Source: Auanema rhodensis (lineage: Eukaryota; Animalia; Nematoda). From it: a stretch of 64,000 nucleotides of DNA. Position 1 is the stretch's first letter. Each line of letters opens with the position of its first letter. Positions 30,223 through 64,000 of the stretch are shown here, one piece after another. Under the pieces are notes generated by a model. The model made no database searches, was not told where the DNA came from, and saw only the letters and a list, made by a program, of their open reading frames with translations. The stretch is from positions 6,262,001 through 6,326,000 of the forward strand of contig OZ059898.1 of NCBI GenBank assembly GCA_964057225.1, read 5' to 3'. The position numbers were made by a program, and so were the translations under genes.

Positions 30223-31071
30223 ATGCTGAATTGGCTGGTTCTCTTAGCGTTGGTTAGCTCTTCCTCTGCCTATTTCATTCATATTGATGCTAACGAGGTT
30301 TAAATATATTCCCTAATTTTTTAAAAATGTTTTTATTTAGGAACAATGCTTTTTTGATAGAGTACTTACCGGAACCACAATGGGCTTGATGTTCGAAGTA
30401 GCCGAAGGAGGATTCCTCGATATTGACGTTAAGGTATGTAAAGAAATCTTTTTTTTTCTTATATATTTATTCTTTAAGATTGTTGGCCCAGATAATAAGG
30501 AAATCTATAAGGGTGAACGTGAAACTTCTGGAAAATACACATTCGCAGCTTATATGGATGGTCTCTACACTTACTGTTTCGGTAATAAGATGAGCACCAT
30601 GACTCCAAAGGTAGTGGGAATCATTCATTACTGAGATAAACTTCCTATTGTAGGCTGTAATGTTCACAGTTGATATTGTTGAACCACATGCTGCTGCAGT
30701 ACCTGGTGCTGCTCCAAACCAAGATGCTGGTAAATCTATAAACTGTTTTTGTGCATTGTAAAGCATATTGCATTTAGCTGATAGCCAAAAGCTAGAAGAA
30801 ATGGTACGTGAATTGTCAACAGCTCTCATGTCAGTAAAACATGAGCAAGAATACATGGAAGTCAGAGAGAGAGTTCACAGAACTAGTGAGTTACTTTCAA
30901 AATTTTTTTGCATGTTAGTACATTTAATTATGAATATTTTTTTCAGTCAACGAAAATACTAACAGTCGCGTTGTTTTATGGGCTATTTTCGAAGCTATTG
31001 TTTTGGTTTCGATGACATTGGGTCAAGTATGGTATTTGAAGCGCTTCTTCGAAGTTAGAACAGTAGTTTAA
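30223..31071 (+). CDS. sel-9: p24/TMED2 cargo receptor (emp24/gp25L family)
   Basis: 6 exons: [101 protein letters not shown]. These are diagnostic TMED2 motifs. TTTCAG lies 7 nt upstream of the ATG. Confidence 0.92.
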
Positions 31072-39700: not shown

Positions 39701-41338
39701 AAAGATGTATAAAATATCTGCCGAAAATGATGAATATTTCAAATAGTATTCTTTATTTCTTTTTCTATCTTGTTATTTTCATAAGAAATGATGAAAACAT
39801 CATAAAAAAGGAAGTTATATCATGCAGTACCAGATAAAAGTTAAACAAAAAAATTGGTTAAGTTGACCAAGTTGGTGGGTATAAATGATTTGTTCCATTG
39901 ACCATAACCTAATTACTTTGATTTCCTATAAACAACTGAAGGTTTTTTTCTCACCTTCCATCTTTTACATCGATGGTACGAGCCCTACTTATTTTAAGTT
40001 TTACGAAATACAAAGTTATATCAGTTGTTTGTAATACAGCTAAAAGATATAATTTGTGGTTACGTCATTTCGTTTGAGCTGATTCAACTTATAGACGATT
40101 TTGGGATATGAAACGATCAGAAATCACATATCAATCTCATAAAAGATATATCTTTTCATTTGATTCGGGAAAAGAAAATTATTTTATGGATTTATCTTTT
40201 TACTTTTTTTTTCAGAGAGAAAATGTAATTCTACTTGTAATAACCGTGGAGCCTGTCTATACGATGGAGAAAAACCTCAATGTTACTGTAATTCCGGCTT
40301 TTTTGGTAAAACCTGTGAATTTGCCGGTAAGCCTTCAACAACAAATATATAATTTGAAAATATTTTCTAAATGTTTTATGAATTTAATCATTCAGATGCC
40401 AATGAATGTTTGGATAGACCTTGCCATTTGATGGCCCATTGTACAAACACTCCCGGAGCTTTTTCTTGCCAATGTTTCCCTGGATTTACCGGAGATGGAT
40501 ATCACTGTGCCGGTAAGTTTTTCCAAAATATAAATTCTTATAAATTTAAAATATATAAGAATAGTTAAATATTCAATCCTTTTTGTCATTTCTTCTCATC
40601 ATCACCATCTTCATCATCATTCAACACTTTTTTTTGCAACAAACCTATTAATTATAAGAAAATGTTTATAAGTTTCTTTAAGTTGTTTGCTATATAAGCC
40701 ATAAAACTTAAAAAAAAACATGACGGAAGTATAAAGATAGATTGGGTTTGTATGGACAAGTGGTCCCGAACCTTTAAAACCTTCTACTTTTTAGTCAAAA
40801 AAACATCTGTGAATGTCCTTGTTCTGAATTTGTCTTTGTAATACATACATCCAATTTTATATTTACGTAGTATAACATTAATTTATTCAAAAGAATTGAA
40901 AAGAATTACAGCACCACCCATATCGTCATTTCTCATTAATCTTCTTTCTTTGATTTTCATTTTTTTTGTTTTCATTTGAACATCTGTTGACATACGATTA
41001 CCTGAATATAACAAAAATGGCAGATTCTTTTAAATTATAATATATATTTATATGATTAAATATCCATTTAATTATATGACATTGACAAACTATTCAGTTA
41101 AAATAATTGGATAATGTTTCATAATTGTTTCAAAATAATTATTTGAAAAAACCTATTTAATATATAAACTATTATATATATATAGTATATATGATCTTAG
41201 ATATATTATAAGTATATTGTTACTTTCATATATATGTTTCAAGTTATTATAGTAGAAAAATATTATATAGTTTAAAATCATTCATATGATGATGATTCAA
41301 TAGGTACTTGTATTTACCTAGAAGACCACTGACCTTCT
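36720..41338. promoter_or_regulatory. Nuclear-receptor (NR5A/FTZ-F1-type) half-sites around the fbn-1 5' end
   Basis: TGACCTTG at 36741 inside a GC-rich patch, TGACCTTT at 37366, TGACCTTCA at 38352, CAAGGTCA at 39258 (intron 2) and TGACCTTC at 41330 (intron 4). Confidence 0.4.
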
Positions 41339-44300
41339 CTTAAATATTTAGTTAACTAGATAACATGAAGGCTAAAGTCTCATATACTATTTGCAAAATA
41401 ATTTTTTTTTCTCATTAAAATCTTTTTTTTCTTGTAACATTCAATTGAAATATAAGAGATCGGGAAAAAAAGACATAAAAGTGTCCAACCGTTCACATCA
41501 CAGCATGAAATCTAAATGAATATTCGTATATGGCATTTGACGTGTAAAATATTTATTATCACGTTAATTTATCTTTAATTTATTCTTTTATTATTTATGT
41601 AAATATATATATATTGTTAAGAACAATATATATATATAGCTATTTGTATCAAAATGTTTTTAAAAACATTGGAGATGACATGATGTCTTGGTGATTGAGT
41701 TGTTGCTAAAAGATTTATTTTTCAACATGACTACATGACCAATTTGCAGACATTATAAGAAATTTAACCTATAATTAGAATTTAGTTAAATGTCAGAAAA
41801 AACCTTGAATCTTTTGTAAAAAATGTTAATATATGTATGTATATACATATAAACTGAACGCAGTTTGCACTTATACAAGAAAATGAAGAAAAAAAATGAT
41901 TGACATGACCAGTTTTGATGTAATTTCTTTGAATGATTTTTGAACGAAAAACTTGATATTTTGTTTCAAAAAAAAATAATTTAACATATAATATATAAAT
42001 ACATTTCAGATATTGATGAATGTGCTTCAAACATGACCACATGTCCAGAAAATTCTATTTGTGTTAATCTTCCTGGAACTCATTACTGTAATTGTACAGA
42101 AGGATTTAGTCAAAAAGGAGAACACCCACATGCTAAATGTGTTGATATTGATGAATGTTCAAAGGGAATTCATAGCTGTAAATCAAATGAAATATGTGAA
42201 AATACTATTGGAAACTTCAATTGTGTTTCTAAATGTTCTGAGGGATATGAATACAAGAATGGAGAATGTGTTGATTTGAATGAATGCCGACGTGAGAACG
42301 TCTGTGATCCTCGAGCTGAATGTATAAATCTACCTGGAAGTTACAAATGTATCTGTGAAGATGGATTAGAAGGTGATGGAAAGACCTGTCAACGTATGTT
42401 ATCATCATGCATGTATATGGATAATATGATTTGATTTTCAGCAATCACTGATTGTACACAGCGAGACGATTTGTGTGATCGACATGCGCTCTGCATTCCA
42501 GCTCTTAAGATGTGCTATTGTCAAGCTGGATATGCTGGAGATGGAATTACTTGCAATGGTAACAAACATAATATTTTAATATTTTAATATTCTTATGTCA
42601 CAGATGTAAATGAATGTGAAGCATTGGAAAATCCCTGCCAAAATCAAAGAGGAGATCGATGTGTAAATATTGAAGGAGGATATATCTGTTGTGATGATGA
42701 CCAAGACGATGAACGCTGTATTCAAGACCAGGGAGCATTCTGCTCCGGCGGTTGTGGCTTGAATGCTTTCTGCGCTAATCAAACTTGTCAATGTCAACCT
42801 GGATTTATTGGTGACCCAAGCAAGAAATGTCTTGGTAAGTTGTGAATATGAAATACTTCAGTAAATCCATATATTACTTAGATGTTAATGAATGTGAGGT
42901 CGATAACATTTGTTCCGGAGTTGGACAATGGTGTATCAATGTTCTCGGCAGTTTCTTATGCTGTGGACCTGATAGCAAAGAAATTGAATGTCAAGGAGCT
43001 CATATCTTCAAAACTCTTGATGGACATCATCACATTTTAGAGCATAATAGCTCTGCAGCTGAAAGATGGATTGGTTCATCTGACAATGCTGTGGCTTCTG
43101 AAGCCGGAACAGTTCGTGTTGTAGGACAGTTACCTAGTGTTAGCGCAAGTTCAAGTAAGACTTTAATGAATTTGTTAAAAGCTCATGTTTTACATTCAGA
43201 ACGACCATGTACATCATATTGCCCACCAAATTCTGAATGCATTGACGGGTTCTGTATATGCTCCAAAGGTTATGGCGGTAATCCAAACTTTGGATGTGAA
43301 GGTATAAATTATAATAATAAATATAATTTACAAATAAAATATATAATTTAGATATTGATGAATGTAGAACAACTAAACCATGCTTAGAAGATAAAGATAA
43401 TTGGTGTGTCAATACTGATGGAGGATTTACTTGTTGTAATGTTAATAGTACTCAATCAGATTGTATAGGTATAACTATTAGATTTGTTTGAATTTCTAAT
43501 AATTCTACTATATAGGACTGGAAATTTCACCTGGAGGTCTCAGACTAACAGGCAGTTCCATTGAAAATGGTGAAACTGTTATATCGGCTTCTTTAAATGA
43601 ATCAATAGGATCAGAGATTATAAGTCATCATATTCAAGAAGTAATTTATTATTATTATAATATAATAATTAATTAATTAAAATTAATTTATAGAGCCGAA
43701 ACTTCTCAGAAGGTGGTCATATCATCTTAGTTAAGAGTAGAGTAAATAGTGGAGATAATATATTAAGTACAACAATTGGAGATAAAGGAATTGAAATTAT
43801 TCCAACTACCATAGGAACTGGAGAGATTGATAGTTTAGAAACAACTACACAGCTACCAGGAGTTGTTTCCACATTAGGCGGTACTAAAGCTACTGTTTCT
43901 ACGTCTATCCCAATCTCAGAGATTCCAGTTCATCCAACTGATATTCCAATTATTATTGAGGTTTATTATTAATTATTTTCTAATTTTTTATTTATAATAT
44001 TTAGGAATTGAAAAAAGGAATCAATCAACCTGATTTTATTCTTTCTGGTAAAGGAAAGATTGATATTGAAGGATCAGGAATTAAAGACGAACGTATTGTG
44101 GATGAACATGATCAAAGCGAAATCGAAGGTTCTGGTATTGATGGAGCTGAATCGAGCTCATTCACAAACTCATCTGGAGGAACATTTGTTGTTCAAACTG
44201 GCAAATTCGGAAGACCAATTCACATTCCAAATCTTCCTAATATTACCGAAATACTATCTAACGCACAGAAGCCAGAAGATACAAATAGCACTGCTACACA

Positions 44301-47300
44301 TGATATTCCTGAAGGAGCAATTGAAAACATCAAATCTGAAACTGGTGGAAAGATTATTATTCAAACTGGAGGAAAAGGACAATCTGGATCACAAATTATT
44401 TTGGGCAATGGATTACCTCAAGGAGTTCATCCAACAGGCTCAATTGTGCCCGATAACACCCATGTTCCTACTACATCTGATGGACATCTTCCTGATGGCT
44501 CTGAAGGCGCATCAAAGTTAAATTCTGAAGGTCGTGTCTTGATTTTCAGTGGAGGTAACGGAACAGTCCCAACTGAAAAACTCATCCATATACCTGATGG
44601 TGTTGTTTTATCAAATGAAACTAACAAAAGTATCATTTTACCTGATGGAAATGGATCATCAATCACCAATTCTGAAGGAAGACTAGTGATTGTGAAACCT
44701 GGAACAACAACTGAAGATGGAACATCGAACAAAAAAGGACCATCATCTGGAAACTTGAAAATTCACATCACAACCGCAGAAGAAACATCAACTCCTTCTG
44801 ATTTCACTGAACAAGTGGGATTAGAGATTGTGAATACTGGACCCACAAGTCCTCCTGATGTTGATATTACTGATAGCTTTGTTGGTGGTAAGGATACTAC
44901 TGATTTCCATACAACAACAAGCACTTTCACCACTGGAAGCCATGGATCAAGTGGACATGTTGAACAAGGTCAAGTTATCTTCTCGAAAACTCCCGAAGTT
45001 ACCTCAGAAGGTTCTGGCTTTGGAACCGAGCGGCCTAATGAGTTCACAAATCAACCTGAAGATCATATTCCAACCGATAAAGTTGAGCCAGGAGAACTTG
45101 GTTTGGAAATCATTGCAACTGGACCAACAGAACCCGCCTTGGAAACTACTACTTTCACAATCACAACACCTGAAACGCCAAGTACCAATGAACCAGATCT
45201 TGTTATTGTACCAGAGGATGGTTTTGAAACTCGGCCAAATGATAAGAATGCTAGTACAACAGGCCATGAACTTCCAGAAGGCAGTGGAGAACAACCAAAA
45301 ACAGATATTACTGATGGAACTGAAACAGAAAATATTTCTACAGGAGATCATCACCCAAAGCTGAATCGTACCATAATATCAAGTGGCGAAGTAGATCCAG
45401 TTGATGAAGATTTGATTGGTGGCCATGGAGAAAGTTCAGAATTTGCTTCTGGTGAACGAGGGCCTAACGAGTTGACTCCATCTACAACGGAAACACCATC
45501 ATCAACTGAAATGGGCTTAGAAATTGTCACTGATCAACTAACCACATCACAACCTGATATTTCTACAACCACTGAAGAATCATTAACTAAAATTACTGTC
45601 GGATCTGAAACAACTACTGTCGCTGTCCATTCTAGTACCAATGCTCCAGAACCCACATCAACCGAAGCAGAGTCTACCACTACTCTCGGATCTTCTAGCA
45701 CCAGTGCTCCAGAATCTACATCAACCGAAGCAGAGTCTACCACTACTTCCGGATCTTCTAGCACCAATGCTCCAGAATCCACATCAACCAAAGCAGAGTC
45801 TACCACTACTTCCGGATCTTCTAGCACCAGTGCTCCAGAATCCACATCAACCGAAGCAGAGTCTACCTCTACTTCCGGATCTTCCAGCACCAATGCTCCA
45901 GAACCCACATCAAGCGAAGCAGAGTCTACCACTACTCTCGGATCTTCTAGCACCAGTGCTCCAGAATCTACATCAACCGAAGCAGAGTCTACCACTACTT
46001 CCGGATCTTCTAGCACCAATGCTCCAGAATCCACATCAACCAAAGCAGAGTCTACCACTACTTCCGGATCTTCTAGCACCAGTGCTCCAGAATCCACATC
46101 AACCGAAGCAGAGTCTACCTCTACTTCCGGATCTTCCAGCACCAATGCTCCAGAACCCACATCAAGCGAAGCAGAGTCTACCACTGCTTCCGGATCTTCC
46201 AGCACCAGTGCTCCAGAATCCACATCAACCGAAGCAGAGTCTACCTCTACTTCCGTATCTTCCAGCACCAGTGCTCCAGAATCCACATCAACCGAAGCAG
46301 AGTCTACCTCTACTTCCGGATCTTCCAGCACCAGTGCTCCAGAATCCACATCAACCGAAGCAGAGTCTACCTCTACTTCCGGATCTTCTAGCACCAGTGC
46401 TCCAGAATCCACATCAACCGAAGCAGAGTCTACCTCTACTTCCGGATCTTCCAGCACCAGTGCTCCAGAATCCACATCAAACAAAGCAGAGTCTACCACT
46501 ACTTCCGGATCTTCTAGCACCAGTGCTCCAGAATCCACATCAACCGAAGCAGAGTCTACCTCTACTTCCGGATCTTCCAGCACCAGTGCTCCAGAATCCA
46601 CATCAACCAAAGCAGAGTCTACTACTACTTCCGGATCTTCTAGCACCAGTGCTCCAGAATCCACATCAACCGAAGCAGAGTCTACCTCTACTTCCGAATC
46701 TACCAGCACCAGTGCTCCAGAATCCACATCAACCGAAGCAGAGTCTACCACTGCTTCCGAATCTTCCAGCACCAGTGCTCCAGAATCCACATCAACCGAA
46801 GCAGAGTCTATCACTACTTCCGGATCTTCCAGCACCAGTGCTCCAGAATCCACATCAACTGAAGCTCAATCTACTGCTGCTTCCGGATCGTCTAGTACCA
46901 TCGCTCCAGAATCCACATCAACCGAAGCAGAGTCTATCACTACTTCCGGATCTTCCAGCACCAGTGCTCCAGAATCCACATCATCTGAAGCTCAATCTAC
47001 TGCTGCTTCCGGATCTTCTAGCACCAGTGCTCCAGAATCCACATCAACCGAAGCAGAGTCTACCACTACTTCCGGATCTTCCAGCACCAGTGCTCCAGAA
47101 TCCGCATCAACCGAAGCTCAATCTACTGCTGCTTCCGGATTGTCTAGTACCATCGCTCCTGAATCCACATCAACCGAAGCAGAGTCTACCACTACTCTTG
47201 GTGAAATTGCTAAGGGATCAATTGTTTCGTCCACATCCGCTTCTGTTACAACTGGAACTCCCGAAATTACCACTGAGTCAACTACAACCATAGAATCAAC

Positions 47301-50300
47301 AACAGCTGAAGTTATCTCATCTACAATCGCTAAACTTTCAATCCCACACAGCTCTACAACATCCCTGCCCGATGAAGATTTGACAGATGCCACAACCTTA
47401 CCAACGGATGAGACCACAGAAGGATCAGAATCTGCGATTACTGACGCCGCAACAGGAAAACAGAGTCGTCAACCAACAACGCTTGAACCTTTACTTGAAG
47501 TAACTACTCTACAAGAGACAACAACACCTTTAATTGCTACATTCACACCGGAAATTGATGAATCTGAGCCAACTGATGAAGAGAAAAAAGATGAATTTGC
47601 TTTGAGAACGACCACAATAAAGCCTGCAACCCTAGGACCAAATAATACAACCAAATGTATTAGTAGTGACGAGTGTGGAGATGATGCACAATGCGAACGA
47701 CGAACAGGTGCTTGTCGCTGTTATCCTGGATTTGAAGGATCCCCACCATCAATTCCATGTAAAGATGTTGATGAATGCGCAGAAGGCTTGCACAAATGTC
47801 ATCCATCAGCTCGTTGTCATAACTACAACGGTGGATATGCATGTTTCTGTCAAATGGGCTATCGCAAGAATAGCGATGGAGAATGTGTAGATATCAATGA
47901 ATGTGAAGAATCTCGAGGAACTTGCTGCAGTGTAAACGGTACATGTGTTAACAAACCTGGATCATATGGATGCGAATGCAAATCCGGATTTACTGGAGAT
48001 GGATATAACTGTATGCCAGTTGAGAAAAGAATCTGTCAAGACTTTGAATTTGATAAAGCTGGATGTGGTCATAATCATATGTGTATGATTGATGGTGAAG
48101 GAAATTTCGATTGTAACACATGCAAAATGGGATTCCAAATGATTAATGGATCATGTAGTGATATCAATGAATGTGCTACATCTGATTTACACATGTGTGA
48201 TGAGAATGCTAACTGTAACAACTTGCTTGGAACTTATGCTTGTCAATGTAAAGAAGGATACCGTGGAGATGGATTTATGTGCAAAGGTATCAACTATTAT
48301 TTCTTATAACTGTAATAATTTTTTAATTTAGATATTGATGAATGTGCTGAATCACATAGTCATTGTCATCCGCAAGCAATCTGCACCAACTTGCCAGGCT
48401 CATATAACTGTAGTTGCCCTGAAGGATTCACTGGGGAAGGACAAACAAGCTGTCAAAACCCAGTAGAAAAAAGCTGTGAAGATGTTGGAAAGTTCTGTGG
48501 ACGTGTTGAACATACTTCATGTTTATCCGTACGCATTTTCAACGGAAGCTTAGCTAGTGTATGCGAATGTGAACCCGGATACCGATACAATGCACATTCA
48601 AACAGCTGTGAAGGTATTTATCCATAGTTCAACTTATTTTTACATTTTTGATTTATAGATATCAATGAATGCATGGAAAACCGTCATAACTGTGATCCAG
48701 CTTCTGCTGTTTGTGTTAACACTGTAGGAGATTATACTTGTGAATGTGCCGAAGGATATGAAGGAGTTGGAGGAATCTGTGTTGATGTAAATGAATGTGA
48801 ACGTGGTCTTGCTGGTTGTCATTCTATGGCAATGTGCTTGAATCAACCTGGAAGCTGCGGATGTAAATGTATGGAAGGATTTACTGGAGATGGCATTCAA
48901 TGCACATGTATGTCAATTCGAATGACTAGCAATTTAATTTTTAAAAATATTTTAGCTACAACTCCTGATGATCTATGCACTGTTGAATGGCAAAGACTCT
49001 GTCGTTTGGAGAATAAAACTTGCCATATTGATGAAGAAGATGTTCCTCAATGTGGATCATGTATTGAAGGTCATCATCCAATCAATGGCTCTTGCCAACG
49101 TAAATTTCAAAAATATATAAGAAAATCATTAATTTCATTCATTTAAGCAGTTGAAGGTGCTGGAAATTGTGCTGATCGTACAATGAATAAATGTCATCCA
49201 AATGCTGAATGTATTGATGTACAACCTGGAAGACATTTCTGTACATGTAAAGTTGGATACATTGGAGATGGCATGAGATGTGACGGTGAGATATTTCATA
49301 AACAATATTTGAATGATATTCTTGCATGATTTATTTATTTTTTATACATATACATATAGTATATATGAATATGAAATATTTTCATATTCAGATATTGATG
49401 AATGTTCTGTGCCTGGTATATGTGATGAGCATGCTACTTGCACAAATCTTGAAGGATCTTTCACTTGCACATGTAAATCCGGATTTTTCGGAAATGGTTT
49501 TACTTGTAAAAATACTTCTACTAGCCTGTTGACCAATAGCACTCAGGGTAAGCTTGTTTACAAGCTTATTCATTTATATATTTTTATGTAACGCATGAGC
49601 TTCATTCAATACTTTAGGTCCAAATTGTCATTTGGATGCTGGATTATGTCACGAAAATGCTACATGTCATATGGACGGACATTGCAAATGCAATGATGGC
49701 TTTGAAGGAGATGGTATTATTATCTGTACTGGTATGTGATTTATCAGCTATATCGTTTTGAAACTTATCTGAATTTTCAGCAGAAAAGAACGGATCTTTA
49801 ACTGTCGGACCGGAACCACCTGTCCTTTTAAGACAAACAACAGCTCTTCCCAATGATCAAATTACTTCTCAAGGTACGTCGGAACATCCCATCACATCTG
49901 CACCGACAACAACAACTATCGTCAACGATACTAGCATGACTAAATCACCAACTGAAATCAATACGCCTGCTATGGAAAGAACGACGTTGCAGCCTGATGG
50001 CACGTCTACTTCTTTCGATTTCAAATCTGCACGAACCAACAACTTACCAGCAATAATGTCAACAACTCAATCAACCACACCAATAACAAAGCCAGAAATA
50101 CTGACGTTAACTTCAACTACATCTAATCCCAATAATTTAACGGCTTCTGAAACAGATAGCCATAATAATTCAAAGACAACGATTAAGCAAACGCTGTTAG
50201 CTTCAACAACATCGAAGACATTCGATACTATAACATCCACTACTCCACTAACTGAAGAGACATTCACTTTTTCCACAACAACACCAATCTCACAAAATAC

Positions 50301-53300
50301 ACACGAACCAACACTTACAGTTCGATTTAATACTCAAAATAACACCCTTCCCAATAATCCTCCTAACGCAACGGACTTCGAATCAAATCCTATGACCACA
50401 ATATTTACTGGAACTACACACTTATCTGAAACAGATAATTCTCCGAAGCCTTCTGATGGTAAAGTTACCACTACACCAACTAGTGGAACAGCCTCTTCTT
50501 CTGAAGCTTCTGAATCAACAAAAGGTTCTCATTTTGAAACAACTACCCCGGTCAGTGAATCAACCACTAAAATTGCGCCATCAACTTCAAACAGTCCCTC
50601 CACAAACTCACTTGGAGTTTCACAATCCACCAAACCTTCCGATGGTTCTCAATTGTCAACTCCAAGCAGTGTCACGACCAGTTCACCTGGAGCTTCAGAT
50701 TCCACAAAACCTTCTGATGGTTCCGAATTGTCCACTCCAAGCGTTGTCACAACCACTTCACCTGGAGCTTCAGATTCCACAAAACCTTCCGATGGTTCTG
50801 AATTGTCAACTCCAAGCAGTGTCACAACCAGTTCACCTGGAGCTTCAGATTCCACAAAACCTTCCGATGGTTCCGAATTGTCCAATCCAAGCAGTGTCAC
50901 GACCAGTTCACCTGGAGCTTCAGACTCCACAAAACCTTCCGAAGGTTTTGATGTTTCAACTCCAAGCAGTGTCACAACCAGTTCACCTGGAGCTTCAGAT
51001 TCCACAAAACCTTCCGATGCTTCTGAATTGTCAACTCCAAGCAGTGTCACAACCAGTTCACCTGGAGCTTCAGATTCCACAAAACCTTCCGATGGTTCCG
51101 AATTGTCCACTCCAAGCAGTGTCACGACCAGTTCACCTGGAGCTTCAGATTCCACAAAACCTTCCGATGGTTCCGAGTTGACCACTCCAAGCAGTGTCAC
51201 AACAAGTTCACCTGGAGCTTCAGATTCCACAAAACCTTCCGATGGTTCCGAATTGTCCACTCCAAGCAGTGTCACGACCAGTTCACCTGGAGCTTCAGAC
51301 TCCACAAAACCTTCCGATGGTTCCGAATTGTCCACTCCAAGCAGTGTCACGACCAGTTCACCTGGAGCTTCAGACTCCACAAAACCTTCCGATGGTTCCG
51401 AATTGTCCACTCCAAGCAGTGTCACGACCAGTTCACCTGGAGCTTCAGACTCCACAAAACCTTCCGATGGTTCTGAAGCCACAACTCCAGGTAGTGACAC
51501 AACAAGTTCACCTGGAGCTTCAGATTCCACAAAACCTTCCGATGGTTCCGAATTGACCACTCCAAGCAGTGTCACGACCAGTTCACCTGGAGCTTCAGAC
51601 TCCACAAAACCTTCCAATGGTTCTGAATTGTCAACTCCAAGCGGTGTCACAACCAGTTCACCTGGAGCTTCAGATTCGACCAAACCTTCCCATAGTTCCG
51701 AAGCTGTAACACCAGGTTCTGGCAAAACCAGTTCACCTGGAGCTTCAGACTCCACAAAACCTTCCGATGGTTCCGAATTGTCCACTCCAAGCAGTGTCAC
51801 AACCAGTTCACCTGGAGCTTCAGACTCCACAAAACCTTCCGATGGTTCCGAATTGACCACTCCAAGCAGTGTCACAACAAGTTCACCTGGAGCTTCAGAT
51901 TCCACAAAACCTTCCGATGGTTCTGAATTGTCAACTCGAAGCGGTGTCACAACAAGTTTACCTGGAGCTTCAGACTCCACAAAACCTTCCAATGGTTCTG
52001 AATTGTCAACTCCAAGCGGTGTCACAACCAGTTCACCTGGAGCTTCAGACTCCACAAAACCTTCCGATGGTTCCGAATTGACCACTCCAAGCAGTGTCAC
52101 AACAAATTCACCTGGAGCTTCAGATTCCACAAAACCTTCCGATGGTTCCGAATTGTCCACTCCAAGCAGTGTCACAACAAATTCACCTGGAGCTTCAGAT
52201 TCCACAAAACCTTCCGATGGTTCCGAATTGTCCACTCCAAGCAGTGTCACGACCAGTTCACCTGGAGCTTCAGACTCCACAAAACCTTCCAATGGTTCTG
52301 AATTGTCAACTCCAAGCGGTGTCACAACCAGTTCACCTGGAGCTTCAGACTCCACAAAACCTTCCGATGGTTCCGAATTGACCACTCCAAGCAGTGTCAC
52401 AACAAGTTCACCTGGAGCTTCAGATTCCACAAAACCGTCCGATGGTTCCGAATTGTCCACTCCAAGCAGTGTCACGACCAGTTCACCTGGAGCTTCAGAC
52501 TCCACAAAACCTTCCGATGGTTCCGAATTGACCACTCCAGGCAGTGTCACAACAAGTTCACCTGGAGCTTCAGACTCCACAAAACTTTCCGATGGTTCCG
52601 AATTGACCACTCCAAGCAGTGTCACAACAAGTTCACCTGGAGCTTCAGATTCCACAAAACCTTCCGATGGTTCTGAATTGTCAACTCCAAGCGGTGTCAC
52701 AACAAGTTCACCTGGAGCTTCAGATTCCACAAAACCTTCCCATGGTTCCGAATTGTCCACTCCAAGCAGTGTCACGACCAGTTCACCTGGAGCTTCAGAC
52801 TCCACAAAACCTTCCGATGGTTCCGAATTGACCACTCCAAGCGGTGTCACAACAAGTTTACCTGGAGCTTCAGATTCCACAAAACCTTCCGATGGTTCCG
52901 AATTGTCCACTCCAAGCAGTGTCACAACCAGTTCACCTGGAGCTTCAGACTCCACAAAACCTTCCGATGGTTCCGAATTGACCACTCCAAGCAGTGTCAC
53001 AACAAGTTTACCTGGAGCTTCAGATTCCACAAAACCTTCCGATGGTTCCGAATTGTCCACTCCAAGCAGTGTCACAACCAGTTCACCTGGAGCTTCAGAC
53101 TCCACAAAACCTTCCGATGGTTCCGAATTGACCACTCCAAGCAGTGTCACAACAAGTTCACCTGGAGCTTCAGATTCCACAAAACCTTCCGATGGTTCCG
53201 AATTGTCCACTCCAAGCGGTGTCACGACCAGTTCATCTGGAGCTTCAGACTCCACAAAACCTTCCGATGGTTCTGAATTGTCAACTCCAAGCGGTGTCAC

Positions 53301-56300
53301 AACAAGTTCACCTGGAGCTTCAGACTCCACAAAACCTTCCGATGGTTCTGAATTGTCAACTCCAAGCGGTGTCACAACAAGTTCACCTGGAGCTTCAGAC
53401 TCCACAAAACCTTCCGATGGTTCTGAATTGTCAACTCCAAGCGGTGTCACAACAAGTTCACCTGGAGCTTCAGATTCCACAAAACCTTCCGATGGTTCCG
53501 AATTGTCCACTCCAAGCAGTGTCACGACCAGTTCACCTGGAGCTTCAGATTCCACAAAACCTTCCGATGATTCCGAATTGTCCACTCCAAGCAGTGTTAC
53601 AACCAGTTCAACTGAATCTTCAGATCCCACCAAACCTTCCGATGATTCTGAATTGTCCACTCCAAGCAGAGGCAGCACTAGTTCACCTGGAGATTCAGAT
53701 TCCACCAAACCCTCTGATTTTTCTGATGTTTCAACTCCAAGCAGTGTTACAACCAGTTCACCTGGAGCTTCAGACTCCACAAAACCTTCCGAAGGTTTTG
53801 ATGTTTCAACTCCAAGCAGTGGTACAACCAGTTCAGCTCAAGCTTCAGAATCTGCAAAGCCTTCTGATGAAACTAAAACAACCTTTCATCCAAAACATCT
53901 GAGTTTTTCGAGAGTTCCTGATGAAAAATCAACCACACCAACTGAGAACATCGTAACAGCCATATCCCACATGATTTCGAACGTTTTCTCGACTACTCCA
54001 AGTGCTCCAACAACACGAATGGAGGATGTTATGGGATTGGAGATCATGAATCCCAATAAGTTTTCCCAAAATCCGAAATTCGTAGCGAAAACAACCACAG
54101 CTTCTGCCAAATCTGTCCTAGACTCTTCTACCCTTCCATCTTCTTCTGAAGTTTCAATTACTGAAGATTCTGGTGAAGAGCCGACTACTGTGATGGAGGA
54201 TAAGATGGGCTTGGAAATTATGATTCCACGAAGACCAAATGTAAAATCAACCTTAGGGCCACAGCTTACTTCCTCTTCAGCAAATCCGAGCGATACTGTT
54301 TCTGCTTCATCTACTTCTTCAGTAACTCCTGAAGGTGAAAGCACTGTCTCAGTTTCATCTGGCTCATCAACTACTCCAGGTTCTAAAGCTAATGTTGTAA
54401 CCTCTACCGGAGCTTCAGTCACTCCTGGAAGTGAAAGCACTGTCTCAGTGTCTTCCGAAACATCAACTACTCCAGGTTCTGAAGCTAATATTCCAACATC
54501 TACTGGAGCCTCAGTAACTCCTAGAGGTGAAAGCACTGTCTCAGATTCAACTGGAGCATCAACTACTCCAGGTTCTGAAGCTAATATTCCAACATCTACC
54601 GGAGCCTCAGTAACTCCTGGAAGTGAAAGCACTGTCTCAGCTCCATCTGGAACATTAACTACTCCAGGTTCTGAATCTAATATTCCAACATCTACTGGAG
54701 CCTCAGTAACTCCTAGAGGTGAAAGCACTGTCTCAGATTCAACTGGAGCATCAACTACTCCAGGTTCTGAAGCTAATATTCCAACATCTACCGGAGCCTC
54801 AGTAGCTCCTGGAAGTGAAAGCACTGTCTCAGCTCCATCTGGAACATCAACTACCCTTGGTTCTAAAGCTAATGTTGTAACCTCTACCGGAGCTTCAGTC
54901 ACTCCTGGAAGTGAAAGCACTGTCTCAGTGTCTTCTGAAACATCAACTACTCCAGGTTCTGAATCGAATATTCCAACCTCTACCGGAACTTCAGTAACTC
55001 CTGGAGGTGAAAGCACTGTCTCAGCTCCATCTGGAACATCAACAACTCCAGGTTCTAAAGCTAATGTTGTAACTTCTACCGGAGCTTCAGTAACTCCTGG
55101 AAGTGAAAGCACTGTCTCAGATTCAACTGGAGCTTCAACTACTCCAGGTTCTGAATCTAATATTCCAACCTCTACAGGAATTTCAGTAACTCCTGGAGAT
55201 GAAAGCACTGTCTCAGCTCTATCTGGAACATCAACAACTCTAGGTTCTAAAGCTAATGTTGTAACCTCTACCGGAGCTTCAGTAACTCCTGGAAGTGAAA
55301 GCACTGTCTCAACTGGAGCTTCAACTACTCCAGGTTCTGAATCTAATATTCCAACATCTACTGGAGCTTCAGTAACTCCTGGAGGTGAAAGCACTGTCTC
55401 AGCTCCATCTGGAACATCAACAACTCCAGGTTCTAAAGCTAATGTTGTAACCTCTACCGGAGCTTCAGTAACTCCTGGAGGAGAAAGCACTGTCTCAGCT
55501 TCATCTGGAACATCAAGTACTCCAGGTTCTGAATCGAATATTCCAACCTCTACCGGAACTTCAGTAACTCCTGGAGGTGAAAGCACTGTCTCAGCTCCAT
55601 CTGAAACATCAACAACTCCAGGCTCTGAATCGAATATTCCAACCTCTACCGGAACTTCAGTAACTCCTGGAAGTGAAAGCACTGTCTCAGATTCAACTGG
55701 AGCTTCAACTACTCCAGGTTCTGGTTCTAATATTCCAACCTCTACCGGAACTTCAGTAACTCCTGGAGGTGAAAGCACTGTCTCAGCTCCATCTGAAACA
55801 TCAACAACTCCAGGCTCTGAATCGAATATTCCAACCTCTACCGGAACTTCAGTAACTCCTGGAAGTGAAAGCACTGTCTCAGATTCAACTGAAACATCAA
55901 CAACTCCAGGCTCTGAATCGAATATTCCAACCTCTACTGGAGCTTCAGTAACTCCTGGAGGTGAAAGCACTGTCTCAGCTCCATCTGGAACATCAACAAC
56001 TCCAGGCTCTGAATCGAATATTCCAACCTCTACTGGAGCTTCAGTAACTCCTGGAGGTGAAAGCACTGTCTCAGCTCCATCTGGAACATCAACAACTCCA
56101 GGCTCTGAATCGAATATTCCAACCTCTACCGGAACTTCAGTAACTCCTGGAAGTGAAAGCACTGTCTCAGTGTCTTCCGAAACATCAACTACTCCAGGTT
56201 CTGAAGCTAATATTCCAACATCTACTGGAGCCTCAGTAACTCCTAGAGGTGAAAGCACTGTCTCAGATTCAACTGGAGCATCAACTACTCCAGGTTCTGA

Positions 56301-59300
56301 AGCTAATATTCCAACATCTACCGGAGCCTCAGTAACTCCTGGAAGTGAAAGCACTGTCTCAGCTCCATCTGGAACATTAACTACTCCAGGTTCTGAATCT
56401 AATATTCCAACATCTACTGGAGCCTCAGTAACTCCTAGAGGTGAAAGCACTGTCTCAGATTCAACTGGAGCTTCAACTACTCCAGGTTCTGGTTCTAATA
56501 TTCCAACCTCTACTGGAGCTTCAGTAACTCCTGGAGGTGAAAGCACTGTCTCAGCTCCATCTGGAACATCAACAACTCCAGGCTCTGAATCGAATATTCC
56601 AACCTCTACTGGAGCTTCAGTAACTCCTGGAGGTGAAAGCACTGTCTCAGCTCCATCTGGAACATCAACAACTCCAGGCTCTGAATCGAATATTCCAACC
56701 TCTACCGGAACTTCAGTAACTCCTGGAGATGAAAGCACTGTCTCAGCTTCATCTGGAACATCAACAACTCCAGGCTCTGAATCGAATATTCCAACCTCTA
56801 CCGGAACTTCAGTAACTCCTGGAGATGAAAGCACTGTCTCAGCTTCATCTGGACCATCAATCACGTCTACCACTTTTTCCTCCCAATTTACCAATGGCGT
56901 ATCTACAACATCTTTGAAACCTGCAAAGCTCGAGCGCTCTACATCCTCACCTTTGTTTGAAGGAACAACTTCGAAAGAGCGTACACGAGCGACATCAAGT
57001 GGAATAGCTATTGAAATAGATGAAAATGAAAATGTAAAAATTGTTAGCCGAATAACTGGGAAGCCATTGTCACTCGATATAGTATCTGCGACTCCAACAT
57101 TCACTACAGGACATAACACCAAAACAACTTCAAATTCCGATACCTTTACTAATATTCCTAACTTTATTGAATCATCAACACATTTACCAAAAGTATCTGT
57201 GAATGAAACAAATAAGAATTCACAAAATAACGCTACTACTCCATCAATCTCAACTAAAACAACATTAATATCATCTGAAGGACCGTTATCACCAACACAT
57301 TTCACAACGGCTTCACCTTCAAATAATATTGTTTCAACACTCGCTAATTCTCATAAAAAGCCAGGTATAATATTTAAATTTAATTGCTTAGAATATATGT
57401 TTTTGCTTAATAGTATATATAATTTCACTTTTTCATTTTTATTTCTATTTCAGTTTCAGATGATATATCTGTCACTACTGTTGCACCTGATAGCACCACT
57501 TCACCTTCTGTACTCACACCTGATACTCTATCATCACCTAAGATCACTAGTATCGATGGTGATACTTCACAACGTCTTAATGGCGTTAATAACGTTCATG
57601 TTAATCTTAATAACTCACTTTCTATTCACGTATCTGTTTCTGAATCATCAGAAACAGATTTCAAAGATGCACACAAGCCTTCTACTGCACTCACTCAACC
57701 ACCACCAAGATCACACGATGCTGAACATATCAAGTCTAAGTTAACTATCATCGACAACAGTTCTGAAAGAGATATTAATCGCAATCCAAATTTACAATTT
57801 GAGAATAGCACTAGTGTCAGACCTGATGTTGATGATTTGATTAGAGCGTCAAAACCAATAGATTCAATCACTACTAGCATGCCACCTGTATTTGTTCCTG
57901 ATGAAGAAGAAACTGAACATGTAGAGAATGTTGAAAAACATCCACAAACCTCTATTAGCACCAATCAATCATCAATTTCTTCAAATACAACCACTATGCC
58001 TGTAACATCATTCACTTCAAAGGCTCCTAACTCATTCTCTTCTGTCAAAACTACACTTGTTGTCCTTCACTTGTTTTCAACACAAGCACCAAGCAATCAG
58101 ACAATGATCACTGATGATCTCAGTCCTAATCAAAACAATTCAGAAACAACTCGTGGTCCACCTAGTATGACACCTCCTTCTTTGATTGATCCAACAACTG
58201 AATCATCTATTTCCACTGAGAATGCTTATACTGGAACTGCCGAAAGTACTGAGCAGCCAGCAACTACAACGCAGTCAACAACAACATCATCAGCAACAAC
58301 TCCATCAACAACCACGACAGCAGCAGTTACGGAAGGTGAGCCAGATATGCATCACGAATCTAAACACACGCCAAGCACTTTCACATCACTTAGCACAACA
58401 GGCTCAATGATGAACACAAATACATCAATTGACAAAAACAATATCACAAATGCACCAAACACTGTTGATCAAAATACTTTAAAACCTTTAAATACTTTAT
58501 CAACTGAAGTTTCTATGATTGAAACCACAACAAATCAATTAGTTTTTACAACAACTAATGATTTAACTAAAACTTCAACTTTTCGAGATCAATCTGATAT
58601 AAGCAATTCAATCAAAAACCCCAATACGTCTTCTGATATAAAAGAAAATCTTCAGAATACATTTTCAACACCAATGACTTCAAAAGAGTCAAAATTCACT
58701 ACTCAATCTACTGAGACCTCCTCTTTACCAGATGATTTTGATTCAAGATCATCAGTTTCTGAGAGTATTACAACCATAACTTCAATTGACACAACAAAAA
58801 GTTTTGAGAATTTTCAATCAACAACGCCTACTGCTGACCCTCAAACTCTTGAAGAGCTAAACAAATCAAAAACAAACAACCCAACTACCGTAACAGCTTC
58901 TCCAGCTGATCTGCCAGAATCTAAGATTAATTCGGATGTTCGAGTTCATGATCCAAGTAGTAGAACAACCCCATCACCTGAAAAAATTGAGTTTAATATT
59001 CCTTCTAATGGTTCCAACACCACAACTCCAAAGAGTGGTATAACCACGAAACCAAGAGCTTCGGATTCCACAAAACCTTCCGATGGTTCCGAATTGTCCA
59101 CTCCAAGCAGTGTCACGACCAGTTCATCTGGAGCTTCAGACTCCACAAAACCTTCCGATGATTCTGAATTGTCAATTCCAAGCGGTGTCACAACCAGTTC
59201 ACCTGGAGCTTCAGATTCCACCAAACCTTCCGATGGTTCCGAATTGTCCACTCCAAGCAGTGTCACAACCAGTTCACCTGGAGCTTCAGACTCCACAAAA

Positions 59301-62300
59301 TCTTCCGATAGTTCTGAAGTCACAACTCCAATGAGTTTCACAACCAGTTCACCTGGAGATTCAAAATCCACAAAACCTTCCGATGGTTCTGAATTGTCAA
59401 CTCCAAGCAGTGTCACAACCAGTTCACCTGGAGCTTCAGACTCCACAAAATCTTCCGATAGTTCTGAAGCCAAAACTCCAAGCAGTGGAACAACCATTCC
59501 TCTTGGAGTATCAGAATCCATAATATCTTCCGATAGTTCTGAAGCCACTACTCCAAGCGGTGTCACAACCAGTTCACCTGGAGCTTCAGACTTCACAAAG
59601 CCTTCCCATAGTTCCGAAGCTACAACACCAGGTACTGGCAAAACCAGTTCACCTGGAAGTTCCGATTCCACAAAACCTTCTGATGGTTCTGAAGTCTCAA
59701 CTTCAATGAGTAGCACAACCAGTTCACCTGGTGCTTCAGATTCGACCAAACATTCCGATGGTTCTGAAGTCTCAACTCCAATGAGTGGCACAACCAGTTC
59801 ACCTGGAGCTTCCGATTCCACAAAACCTTCTGATGGTTCTGAAGTCTCAACTCCAATGAGTGGCACAACCAGTTCACCTGGAGCTTCAGAATCCACAAAA
59901 CCTTCTGATGGTTCTGAAGTCTCAACTTCAATGAGTAGCACAACCAGTTCACCTGGAGCTTCAGATTCGACCGAACATTCCCATAGTTCCGAAGCTACAA
60001 CACCAGGTACTGGCAAAACCAGTTCACCTGGAAGTTCCGATTCCACAAAACCTTCTGATGGTTCTGAAGTCTCAACTTCAATGAGTAGCACAACCAGTTC
60101 ACCTGGAGCTTCAGATTCGACCAAACATTCCGATGGTTCTGAAGTCTCAACTCCAATGAGTGGCACAACCAGTTCACCTGGAGCTTCCGATTCCACAAAA
60201 CCTTCTGATGGTTTTGAAGTCTCAACTCCAATGAGTGGCACAACCAGTTCACCTGGAGCTTCAGATTCAACTAAACATTCCGATGGTTCTGAAGTCTCAA
60301 CTCCAATGAGTGGCACAACCAGTTCACCTGGAGCTTCCGATTCCACAAAACCTTCTGATGGTTCTGAAGTCTCAACTCCAATGAGTGGCTCAACCAGTTC
60401 ACCTGGAGCTTCCGATTCCACAAAACCTTCTGATGGTTCTGAAGTCTCAACTCCAATGAGTGGCACAACCAGTTCACCTGGAGCTTCAGATTCGACCAAA
60501 CATTCCGATGGTTCTGAAGCCACAACTCCAAGCAGTGGCAGAACCAGTTCACCTGGAGCTTCAGATTCCACAAAACCTTCTGATGGTTCTGAAGTCTCAA
60601 CTCCAATGAGTGGCACAACCAGTTCACCTGGAGCTTCAGATTCGACCAAACATTCCGATGGTTCTGAAGCCACAACTCCAATGAGTGGCTCAACCAGTTC
60701 ACCTGGAGCTTCCGATTCCACAAAACCTTCTGATGGTTCTGAAGTCTCAACTCCAATGAGTGGCTCAACCAGTTCACCTGGAGCTTCCGATTCCACAAAA
60801 CCTTCTGATGGTTCTGAAGTCTCAACTCCAATGAGTGGCACAACCAGTTCACCTGGAGCTTCCGATTCCACAAAACCTTCCGATGCTTCTGAAGTCTCAA
60901 CTCCAATGAGTGGCACAACCAGTTCACCTGAAGCTTCCGATTCCACAAAACCTTCTGATGGTTCTGAAGTCTCAACTCCAATGAGTGGCACAACCAGTTC
61001 ACCTGGAGCTTCAGATTCGACCAAACATTCCGATGGTTCTGAAGCCACAACTCCAATGAGTGGCTCAACCAGTTCACCTGGAGGTTCCGATTCCACAAAA
61101 CCTTCCGATGGTTCTGAAGCCACAACTCCAGGTAGTGACACAACCAGTTCACCTGGAGCTTCAGGTTCCACAAAACTTTCAGATGGTTCTAAAGCCAAAA
61201 CTCCAAGCAGTGGAACAACCATTCCATTTGGAGATTCAGAATCTAAGACAACTTCCAATGGTTCCGAAGTCACAACTTCAAACAGTGTCACAACCAGTTC
61301 ACCTGGAGCTTCCGATTCCACAAAACCTTCTGATGGTTCTGAAGTCTCAACTCCAAACAGTGTCACAACCAGTTCACCTGGAGCTTCCGATTCCACAAAA
61401 CCTTCTGATGGTTCTGAAGTCTCAACTCCAATGAGTGGCACAACCAGTTCACCTGGAGCTTCAGAATCCACAAAATCTTCCGATAGTTCTGAAGCCACAA
61501 CTCCAAGCAGTGGAACAACCATTCCATTTGGAGATTCAGAATCTAAGACAACTTCCAATGGTTCCGAAGTCACAACTTCAAACAGTGTCACAACCAGTTC
61601 ACCTGGAGCTTCCGATTCCACAAAACCTTCTGATGGTTCTGAAGTCTCAACTCCAATGAGTGGCACAACCAGTTCACCTAGAGCTTCAGACTTCACAAAG
61701 CCTTCCCATAGTTCCGAAGCTACAACATCAGGTACTGGCAAAACCAGTTCACCTGGAGGTTCCGAAGCTTCAACACCAGGTACTGGCAAAACCAGTTCAC
61801 CTGGAGCTTCAGATTTCACAAAACATTCCGATGGTTCTGGAGCCACAACTCCAAGCAGTGGCAGAACCAGTTTACCTGGAGCTTCAGATTCGACCAAACC
61901 TTCCGATGGTTCCGAATTGTCGACTCCAAGCAGTGTCACAACCAGTTTGCCTGGAGCTTCAGATTCCACAAAACCTTCTCATGTTTCTGAAGCCACAACT
62001 CCAGGTAGTGGAACAACCACTTCTCTTGGAGATTCAGAATCTACGACAACTTCCAATGCTTCTGAAGTCTCAAATTCAAGCAGTGTCACAACCACTTCCC
62101 CTAGAGCTTCAGAATCCACAAAATCTTCCGATGATTCCGAATTGTCGACTCCAAGCAGTGTCACAACCAGTTTGCCTGGAGCTTCAGAATCTGCAAAGCC
62201 TTCTGATGAAACTAAAACAACCTTTCATCCAAAACATCTGAGTTTTTCGAGAGTTCCTGATGAAAAATCAACCACACCAACTGAGAACATCGTAACAGCC

Positions 62301-64000
62301 ATATCCCACATGATTTCGAACGTTTTCTCGACTACTCCAAGTGCTCCAACAACACGAATGGAGGATGTTATGGGATTGGAGATCATGAATCCCAATAAGT
62401 TTTCCCAAAATCCGAAATTCGTAGCGAAAACAACCACAGCTTCTGCCAAATCTGTCCTAGACTCTTCTACCCTTCCATCTTCTTCTGAAGTTTCAATTAC
62501 TGAAGATTCTGGTGAAGAGCCGACTACTGTGATGGAGGATAAGATGGGCTTGGAAATTATGATTCCACGAAGACCAAATGTAAAATCAACCTTAGGGCCA
62601 CAGCTTACTTCCTCTTCAGCAAATCCGAGCGATACTGTTTCTGCTTCATCTACTTCAGTAACTCCTGAAGGTGAAAGCACTGTCTCAGTTTCATCCGGCT
62701 CATCAACTACTCCAGGTTCTGAATCTAATATTCCAACATCTACCGGAGCTTCAGTAACCCCTGGAGATGAAAGCCCTGTCTCAACTTCAACTGGAGCATC
62801 AACTACTCCAGGTTCTGAATCTAATATTCCAACATCTACTGGAGCTTCAGTAACTCCTGGAGATGAAAGTACTGTCTCAACTTCAACTGTAACTTCAACC
62901 AAGTCTGTTGTTGAAGCCTCGACTCCAACTTCTACTAGAGGTTCCGGAGAAGAGCTAACTACCGTAATGGAGGATAAGATGGGTTTGGAGATTATGAATC
63001 CACGAGGAACACAGGTGACATTCTCATCAAAACCGACATTCTCTGGTGATGTAGCATCCACTTCTTCTCCAACCGGAGTACAAACTACTGGAGATGCTGG
63101 AATCAGCTCATCATCACCACCTAGAGGTTCAACAGCTCCTGGTGATGTAGCATCTACTTCTTCTCCAACTGGAGTACAAACTACTGGAGATGCTGGAATC
63201 AGCTCATCATCACCACCTAGAGGTTCAACAGCTCCTGGTGATGTAGCATCCACTTCTTCTCCATCTGGAGTACAAACTACTGGAGATGCTGGAATCAGCT
63301 CATCATCACCACCTAGAGGTTCAACAGCTCCTGGTGATGTAGCATCCACTTCTTCTCCATCTGGAGTACAAACTACTGGAGATGCTGGAATCAGCTCATC
63401 ATCACCACCTAGAGGTTCAACAGCTCCTGGTGATGTAGCATCCACTTCTTCTCCAACCGGAGTACAAACTACTGGAGATGCTGGAATCAGCTCATCATCA
63501 CCACCTAGAGGTTCAACAGCTCCTGGTGATGTAGCATCCACTTCTTCTCCAACCGGAGTACAAACTACTGGAGATGCTGGAATCAGCTCATCATCACCAC
63601 CTAGAGGTTCAACAGCTCCTGGTGATGTAGCATCCACTTCTTCTCCAACCGGAGTACAAACTACTGGAGATGCTGGAATCAGCTCATCATTACCTAGAGG
63701 TTCAACAGCTCCTGGTGATGTAGCATCCACTTCTTCTCCATCTGGAGTACAAACTACTGGAGTTGCTGGAATCAGCTCATCATCATCACCTAGAGGTTCA
63801 ACAGCTCCTGGTGATGTAGCGTCCACTTCTTCTCCAACTGGAGTACAAACTACTGGAGATGCTGGAATCAGCTCATCATCACCACCTAGAGGTTCAACAG
63901 CTCCTGGTGATGTAGCATCCACTTCTTCTCCATCCGGAGTACAAACTACTGGAGATGCTGGAATCAGCTCATCATTACCTAGAGGTTCAACAGCTCCTGG
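38769..64000 (+). CDS. fbn-1: Fibrillin-like apical extracellular matrix protein (cbEGF arrays plus giant Ser/Thr mucin-like regions); 3' end (expected ZP/TM part) lies beyond the window
   Basis: Signal peptide [24 protein letters not shown]; N-terminal [52 protein letters not shown], recognised as the FBN-1 N-terminus; many D(I/V)(D/N)EC calcium-binding EGF repeats; RGD at 42648-42656. About 20 exons, including 44005-48286, 49781-57364 and 57454->64000. The last is open to the window edge and absent from the ORF track. Confidence 0.88.
45630..47200 (+). repeat. Coding tandem array R1: 63-bp (21-aa) unit, ~25 copies
   Basis: Unit [21 protein letters not shown]; ACCGAAGCAGAGTCTACC recurs at 45661, 45724 and onward. 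Confidence 0.95.
50625..53870 (+). repeat. Coding tandem array R2: 75-bp (25-aa) unit, ~43 copies
   Basis: Unit [25 protein letters not shown]; TCCACAAAACC recurs at 50701, 50776 and onward. Confidence 0.95.
54290..56855 (+). repeat. Coding tandem array R3: 96-bp (32-aa) unit made of two related 16-aa halves, ~26-27 copies
   Basis: Unit [32 protein letters not shown]; GAAAGCACTGTCTCAG recurs at 54337, 54433 and onward. Confidence 0.95.
59040..62200 (+). repeat. Coding tandem array R4: second, more diverged array of the 75-bp R2 family, ~41 copies
   Basis: Same CCTGGAGCTTC..TCCACAAAACC backbone as R2, with the variant [11 protein letters not shown] (ATGAGTGGC) not seen in R2. Confidence 0.93.
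62181..62720 (+). repeat. Near-identical direct duplicate of the non-repetitive spacer at 53842-54384
   Basis: Offset 8339 bp. By eye the copies are identical apart from one 3-bp indel (STSSV vs STSV) and one synonymous TCT/TCC change near the end. Confidence 0.92.
63042..64000 (+). repeat. Coding tandem array R5: 96-bp (32-aa) unit, ~10 copies, truncated by the window edge
   Basis: Unit [32 protein letters not shown]; GGTGATGTAGCATC recurs at 63045, 63141 and onward. Two units are 3 bp shorter. Confidence 0.95.

Follow-up and report, generated by a model that had tools for sequence, protein, structure and literature searches.

A probable giant FBN-1 in the nematode Auanema rhodensis, with mucin-like spacers enlarged by minisatellite amplification and intragenic duplication

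A 64,000-nucleotide (nt) stretch of the Auanema rhodensis genome (the window; assembly GCA_964057225.1, contig OZ059898.1, positions 6,262,001 to 6,326,000) carries the 5′ part of an fbn-1 gene of exceptional length. It is highly likely that this gene encodes a single-copy FBN-1 of ~8,834 amino acids (aa) with the standard layout of the protein, the spacers of which have been enlarged by minisatellite amplification together with an intragenic duplication. The proposed chain would run from a signal peptide through an N-terminal block of EGF and calcium-binding EGF (cbEGF) modules, spacer 1, a central cbEGF cluster, spacer 2 and C-terminal EGFs to a ZP domain, a furin-type site and a transmembrane helix. 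The window belongs to a 181-Mb, 112-contig assembly, in which its source contig measures 21.6 Mb, and the 29 kb past the window edge were also examined. Positions beyond the edge are given as window-equivalent coordinates, which extend the window numbering (an L004 coordinate is the window-equivalent position minus 63000), and all exons, arrays and linkers described below lie on the + strand.

Searches were run exon by exon, the joined model serving only to count length, stops and Cys-free gaps, and junctions were chosen as GT..AG pairs that keep the frame and fit the orthologue alignments. The resulting model has 25 exons, from an ATG at 38769 to a stop at 69703-69705 (window-equivalent), 5.7 kb past the edge, and a coding sequence of 26,505 nt (8,834 aa, a predicted ~0.9 MDa before any glycosylation) with zero internal stops. 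By base 64000 the splice model has reached 7,140 codons, which agrees well with the ~7,200 codons without a stop by the window edge that a first-pass annotation of this DNA had counted. That annotation assigned them all to 43350-64000, however, and here it overshot, as the interval contributes 6,589 codons in the splice model (6,883 being its upper bound) and the full 7,140 requires the upstream exons at 38769-43301.

Exon 1 (38769..38932) contains the start codon of the model and a hydrophobic N terminus that, by eye, resembles a signal peptide; residues 28-95 of the C. bovis orthologue align to 38835-39086 (tblastn). Exons 2-9 (38981..43468; model residues 55-589) form the N-terminal EGF/cbEGF block, with Pfam matches to EGF_CA, EGF_3 and cEGF, calcium-binding families also being found in the exons at 41985-43348, and they align collinearly with FBN-1 of H. 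bacteriophora and of C. bovis (tblastn; 50-67% identity). Exon 10 (43710..43960), a stop-free stretch with in-phase GT..AG junctions and no Pfam family, marks the onset of the Cys-free spacer 1. The bulk of this spacer is encoded by giant exon 11 (E1; 44005..48286; 4,282 nt; 37% Ser+Thr), at the 3′ end of which EGF_CA matches identify the first central cbEGFs. The central cbEGF cluster (47650..49731) comprises the end of exon 11 and exons 12-15 and is 53% identical to residues 1643-2169 of the C. bovis protein. Pfam places EGF_CA, EGF_3 and cEGF in every exon of 47200-49588, which confirms the cbEGF cluster that the first-pass annotation had drawn at 47650-49730.

Spacer 2 is encoded by two further giant exons. 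Exon 16 (E2; 49781..57364; 7,584 nt, or 2,528 codons) supplies its first part and is Cys-free, with 45% Ser+Thr and 10% Pro. A 95-nt, AT-rich intron (57365..57459; 17% GC; GT..TTTCAG), across which the frames are joined in phase 1, leads to exon 17 (E3; 57460..67108, window-equivalent, ending at L004:4108; 9,649 nt), which is defined by a 3,229-codon stop-free stretch with a donor and an acceptor. The stop-free stretches that hold the arrays measure 1,434, 2,660 and 3,229 codons. Within the giant exons, just three short AT-rich in-frame regions were seen, and hidden introns were dismissed as a source of major error, since these regions would change the protein by no more than a few tens of residues. 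Two stretches of exon 17 with GC ≤20% (58461-58583 and L004:3776-3859) are in frame and stop-free and could be tiny introns, with a change in length of at most the same order.

The minus strand is likewise open within the arrays, and open frames there therefore say little by themselves about coding. That the + strand frame is the coding frame is instead established by evidence of other kinds. The non-repetitive linkers and exon ends are open in one frame across 26.5 kb, every junction carries a GT..AG intron of the correct phase, and the exon order is collinear with that of the orthologues. Moreover, when repeat units were cut at an anchor peptide and compared codon by codon, the synonymous share of the differences in array 2 was 0.59, against 0.27 expected for random changes; the corresponding values are 0.39 against 0.27 for array 4 and 0.38 against 0.30 for array 3.

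On the evidence of sequence, the gene is the single-copy fbn-1 orthologue of A. rhodensis, as the first-pass annotation had proposed. A full HMMER scan of the ZP exon (142 aa) against 1.84 billion representative proteins gave 23 matches below 1e-30. The closest are from Ancylostoma caninum (82% identity), Nippostrongylus brasiliensis (80%) and H. bacteriophora (77%), followed by Parelaphostrongylus tenuis (76%), Mesorhabditis belari (68%) and Caenorhabditis (~60%), and two of the matches, including that from N. brasiliensis, carry the UniRef name FBN-1A.1, given by orthology. A. rhodensis, a rhabditine nematode, is related more closely to Strongylida and Heterorhabditis than to Caenorhabditis. 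In tblastn, three regions of the locus (N-terminal block, central EGF cluster and C-terminal EGF/ZP part) are collinear with FBN-1 of C. bovis and of H. bacteriophora, and the ZP exon has one match in the whole 181-Mb genome. Past the end of exon 17 (67108) follow EGF exons with Pfam matches, two exons that match the halves of a cuticlin-type ZP domain, and then an R-x-R-R motif of furin type and a hydrophobic stretch that would span the membrane. The ZP domain, furin-type site and transmembrane helix thus lie 4.4-5.7 kb beyond the window edge, and the ZP region was indeed still ahead where the first-pass annotation had to stop, beginning 4.4 kb further on. Pfam detects CUT_N (34 bits, above the cutoff of 27) and CUT_C (E = 1e-4, below its curated cutoff) at L004:5362-6055, while the R-x-R-R motif and the 27-residue hydrophobic stretch that follow the ZP domain were read by eye in the translation.

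The two Cys-free gaps of the model define the spacers. Spacer 1 (residues 589-1890) has 1,302 aa with 41% Ser+Thr and 7% Pro, and spacer 2 (residues 2431-8176) has 5,746 aa with 44% Ser+Thr and 10% Pro. Both are of mucin type (PTS), being long, Cys-free and tandemly repeated with at least 40% Ser+Thr plus Pro, so that the earlier description of the added length as mucin-like holds for spacer 2, where most of it lies. A short G-L-E-I motif occurs in eight copies in the non-repetitive linkers of both spacers (44818, 45100, 45514, 54034, 54208, 62373, 62547 and 62982), with a G-I-A-I-E-I variant at 57001. Its general form, G-[LI]-E-I, is found in 3-7 copies in the otherwise unalignable spacers of 9 of the 11 orthologue models checked, and in five orthologues the final Cys of the N-terminal EGF block is directly followed by one copy. 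The sequence has the appearance of a conserved short linear motif.

C. elegans FBN-1 (ZK783.1; FBN-1a) provides the reference for this layout. It has 2,781 aa, with Ser/Thr-rich regions at 560-1393 and 1920-2098, a ZP domain at 2438-2674, a furin site at 2676-2679 and a transmembrane segment at 2745-2767 (Kelley et al. 2015, PMC4395870). The A. rhodensis protein is about three times as long and has the same module order, including the succession of ZP domain, furin-type site and transmembrane helix, and its spacers occupy the same two positions as the two Ser/Thr-rich, motif-free regions of the C. elegans protein. The N-terminal block measures 589 aa in A. rhodensis and ~560 aa in C. elegans, the central EGF cluster ~540 and ~527 aa, and the C-terminal EGF/ZP/transmembrane part ~659 and ~683 aa. 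The spacers, by contrast, are longer than in C. elegans, with 1,302 against 834 aa for spacer 1 (1.6-fold) and 5,746 against 179 aa for spacer 2 (32-fold), and 92% of the 6,053 additional residues sit in spacer 2. Their Ser+Thr content is 41-44%, compared with 26-39% in C. elegans, and they consist mostly of homogeneous tandem arrays, unlike those of C. elegans. The C. elegans exons 14-19, which are alternatively spliced in a MEC-8-dependent manner, encode a motif-free region 3′ of the Ser/Thr spacer of exon 8 (PMC4395870); we infer that this region corresponds to spacer 2, in which case small alternatively spliced exons in C. elegans would stand where A. rhodensis has two giant ones.

Six tandem arrays, called by Tandem Repeats Finder and all in one + strand frame, account for ~13.8 kb, ~4,600 aa and 52% of the protein; some of them hold whole-codon insertions or deletions. 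Array 1 (45630..47196), in spacer 1, repeats a 63-bp (21-aa) unit 24.9 times at 95% mean identity to the consensus. The other five belong to spacer 2. Array 2 (50608..53869; 75 bp, 25 aa, 43.5 copies) is followed by a 588-bp linker, copy A (53806..54393), with two GLEI motifs, and by array 3 (54317..56860; 96 bp, 32 aa, 26.6 copies). The 75-bp unit of array 2 is found in this gene alone within the A. rhodensis genome. In exon 17, array 4 (59023..62208; 75 bp, 25 aa, ~42 copies), a paralogue of array 2, is followed by linker copy B (62145..62729) and by array 5 (62653..62944), a three-unit remnant of the 96-bp (32-aa) family of array 3. Array 6 (63043..66015, window-equivalent) is a second 96-bp (32-aa) family of 31.1 copies, 10 inside the window and 21 outside, with units 98.5% identical to their consensus. 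The first-pass annotation had listed five arrays of 21, 25, 32, 25 and 32 aa. All five are real, but a short sixth (array 5) had escaped it, and its last 32-aa array, though genuine, is not of the same family as the first and extends for the most part beyond the window edge.

The spacers grew through in-frame amplification of these minisatellites. Arrays 1, 3 and 4 show higher-order periods of 2, 2 and 5 units (42, 64 and 125 aa), which points to the amplification of several units at a time. Superimposed on this growth is a duplication within the gene. Arrays 2 and 4 are 83% identical, linkers A and B are 97.6% identical, and the three units of array 5 are 84-85% identical to array 3, while the left flanks of arrays 2 and 4 bear no relation to each other, and nor do the right flanks of arrays 3 and 5. 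Matching arrays and linkers between unrelated flanks reveal an intragenic duplication with breakpoints inside the arrays. The copied segment comprises the linker together with part of the 25-aa array before it and the beginning of the 32-aa array after it. Homogenisation within each separate array came later; the middle of array 4 is made of a consensus unit of its own, and array-2-like units persist at its edges. Array 6 is very young. That array 6 arose from array 3, or array 1 from any other array, was considered and rejected, as no DNA similarity links them.

Relatives of the spacers and repeat units were sought in other species. With low-complexity filtering these searches gave zero matches, and without it they returned compositional matches alone, at 20-25% identity. 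For the head of exon 16 with the 25-aa array, no matching protein of 1,390-4,422 aa was present among up to 8,000 candidates from a collection of 5.8 billion proteins.

For comparison with other nematodes, spacer sizes and composition were measured in ten annotated orthologues. At the lower end, FBN-1 of S. hermaphroditum has 3,057-3,086 aa (spacer 1 of 1,269 aa, spacer 2 of under 150 aa) and that of A. viteae 3,195-3,410 aa (1,402 and 187 aa). The C. bovis protein has 4,027 aa (1,106 and 1,153 aa), that of H. bacteriophora at least 4,089 aa (~1,056 and 1,638 aa) and that of Toxocara canis 4,643 aa (2,287 and 531 aa). The largest are found in Aphelenchoides besseyi (5,076 aa; 3,518 and 150 aa), Bursaphelenchus okinawaensis (at least 5,933 aa; spacer 1 of at least 4,133 aa) and Bursaphelenchus xylophilus (7,699-7,789 aa; spacer 1 of 5,471 aa), both Bursaphelenchus proteins having a second Cys-free gap of 260-325 aa just past spacer 1 that may belong to one spacer or the other. 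Giant FBN-1 proteins are therefore already known from annotated orthologues, mostly by way of spacer 1. The first-pass annotation had proposed a lineage-specific extension, and this is true of the repeat units, which match nothing else searched, but not of giant size as such, since the proteins of B. xylophilus (up to 7,789 aa), B. okinawaensis and A. besseyi are giants as well. A. rhodensis FBN-1 leads the sample in length by ~13% and in the size of spacer 2 by a factor of 3.5. The peculiarity of A. rhodensis is thus the enlargement of spacer 2 by young, homogeneous arrays.

Four giant orthologues (B. xylophilus, B. okinawaensis, A. besseyi and T. canis) have the EGF, spacer, EGF and ZP layout in common with A. 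rhodensis and, like it, carry thousands of additional Cys-free, Ser/Thr-rich residues. What is enlarged most in these four is spacer 1 (up to 5,471 aa), whereas in A. rhodensis it is spacer 2. Their enlarged region is also poorer in Ser/Thr (28-34%), and a lag-identity test of the long spacers of aphelenchids and ascarids detected no tandem arrays of high identity. In H. bacteriophora and C. bovis both spacers are enlarged, to ~1.1 thousand residues each (1.6 thousand for spacer 2 of H. bacteriophora), and each protein has one tandem-array region, with best lags of 78 aa, and of 10 and 149 aa, respectively. Their repeat units are nevertheless unrelated to those of A. rhodensis, the spacer 2 of which is 3.5 to 5 times as long as theirs. 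For the closest relatives (Ancylostoma, Nippostrongylus, Cooperia, Angiostrongylus and Parelaphostrongylus) the available models are C-terminal fragments, that of Parelaphostrongylus starting within a Ser/Thr-rich spacer, so published FBN-1 lengths are probably underestimates.

Outside the nematodes, the Drosophila protein Dumpy, of ~23,000 aa, offers a parallel in its large, concertedly evolving Ser/Thr-rich tandem array (PIGSFEAST). In Dumpy, DPY modules lie between the EGFs and the protein is far larger than A. rhodensis FBN-1, to which we liken it by description alone. Kelley et al. regard Dumpy as the closest fly relative of fbn-1 (PMC4395870). As far as their citation of the original work goes, it is a gigantic ZP-domain protein of the apical matrix with many EGF modules, which keeps tension at epidermis-cuticle attachments (Wilkin et al. 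2000, cited in PMC4395870). Vertebrate fibrillins and LTBPs resemble A. rhodensis FBN-1 in their runs of calcium-binding EGFs and their furin processing, although the fibrillins have neither a ZP domain nor mucin spacers. No TB (8-Cys) domain was present among the Pfam matches of the scanned A. rhodensis exons (all but exons 1-4 and 15), and C. elegans FBN-1 likewise has none (PMC4395870).

We tentatively propose the following picture of how such a protein might work. If studies of FBN-1 and Dumpy, and what is generally known about mucins, are a guide, the spacers would be heavily O-glycosylated, extended and hydrated mucin-like segments between stiff rods formed by the cbEGF runs, and the ZP domain would polymerise the protein once furin has freed it. 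With each residue contributing ~0.25 nm, the contour length of spacer 2 would come to ~1.4 micrometres. The role of the spacers may be set by their composition, not by their exact sequence, and a spacer whose role depends on composition would be free to drift and to vary in length.

Several observations weigh against this account of the locus or its interpretation. The case for orthology draws on database names and on proteins of nematodes other than C. elegans, and the dense O-glycosylation and any mechanical role suggested for the spacers on their composition and on work in C. elegans and Drosophila. Word searches for transcript or protein evidence with the unique head of exon 17, the ZP exon, and the exon 16 head with the 25-aa array returned nothing from A. 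rhodensis, a species itself absent from the protein collections searched. In arrays 1 and 6 the synonymous share is near the neutral expectation, and their exact sequence is not visibly constrained. Finally, the array copy numbers come from one assembly. This last point raises the concern that assembly errors, either wrong copy numbers or haplotypes placed in tandem, have inflated the arrays and that the true gene is much shorter. Arrays of near-identical units are error-prone, array 6 being 98.5% identical over 3 kb, and the gene does contain an internal duplicate with 97.6% identical linkers. We nevertheless consider large-scale inflation very improbable. The two 25-aa arrays are 17% divergent, each with a consensus of its own, the units bear ordered variants and higher-order periods, the frame is intact through 26.5 kb and the 21.6-Mb contig points to long-read data. 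The duplicate is flanked by unrelated unique sequence, unlike a tandem haplotype, and such an artefact is ruled out by these dissimilar flanks together with the single copy of the gene.

A separate question is whether the full 8.8-thousand-residue form is the only product. Exon 16 could be a cassette, such that a ~6,300-aa form coexists with the full-length protein or dominates and length is set by splicing. Exon 16 begins and ends in phase 1 and, having a length divisible by 3, could be skipped without loss of frame. Neither exon 11 nor exon 17 has a length divisible by 3, and any isoform with the ZP domain in frame must therefore contain both. The MEC-8-dependent exons 14-19 of C. elegans would be a precedent in the same region (PMC4395870), but their mapping onto spacer 2 is our own, and frame symmetry such as that of exon 16 arises by accident one time in three. 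We regard a skipped exon 16 as possible yet rather doubtful; it supplements, and does not displace, the explanation of a giant FBN-1 with amplified spacers.

The first-pass annotation had suggested that the extension acts as a tunable spacer or spring in the apical matrix. Such a role is plausible on analogy. C. elegans FBN-1 opposes mechanical deformation of the epidermis, Dumpy, as portrayed there, is a tension-bearing giant ZP protein (PMC4395870), and spacers have gained thousands of residues independently in several nematode lineages. That selection has tuned spacer length, as a spring or spacer adjusting matrix thickness or elasticity, seems to us unlikely all the same. Different lineages have enlarged different spacers with unrelated sequences and the youngest arrays show no sequence constraint. 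On these grounds, near-neutral, tolerated growth of minisatellites is no less likely than adaptive tuning. A bolder and decidedly less probable version would make spacer 2 a regulated length module, with exon 16 skipped or included by stage or tissue and copy number varying between individuals, so that the dimensions or compliance of the sheath and precuticle change. If this were true, the locus would be a natural length series relating spacer length to the mechanics of the apical matrix.

Elsewhere at the locus, the intergenic DNA 3′ of fbn-1 (window-equivalent ~77,700-91,700) is rich in (TC)n-type microsatellites, which translate as S-L-S-L runs. Upstream of the gene, open stretches of the + strand at 30341-30962 and 11723-11965 resemble, by eye, exons of genes for a p24/GOLD-type cargo receptor and a two-pore potassium channel.

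FBN-1 is an essential, load-bearing component of the nematode embryonic sheath and precuticle. In this locus and the ten orthologues, which span nematode clades III to V, its folded modules are constant in size, while its motif-free spacers range from under 200 to over 5,700 residues, with a different spacer enlarged in different lineages and in unrelated sequence. Few parts of this conserved matrix protein are thus as plastic in length as the spacers. A. rhodensis FBN-1 represents an extreme case of a trend already visible, not a new kind of system, and a long-read assembly such as that of A. rhodensis offers a clean template for experiments on spacer length.

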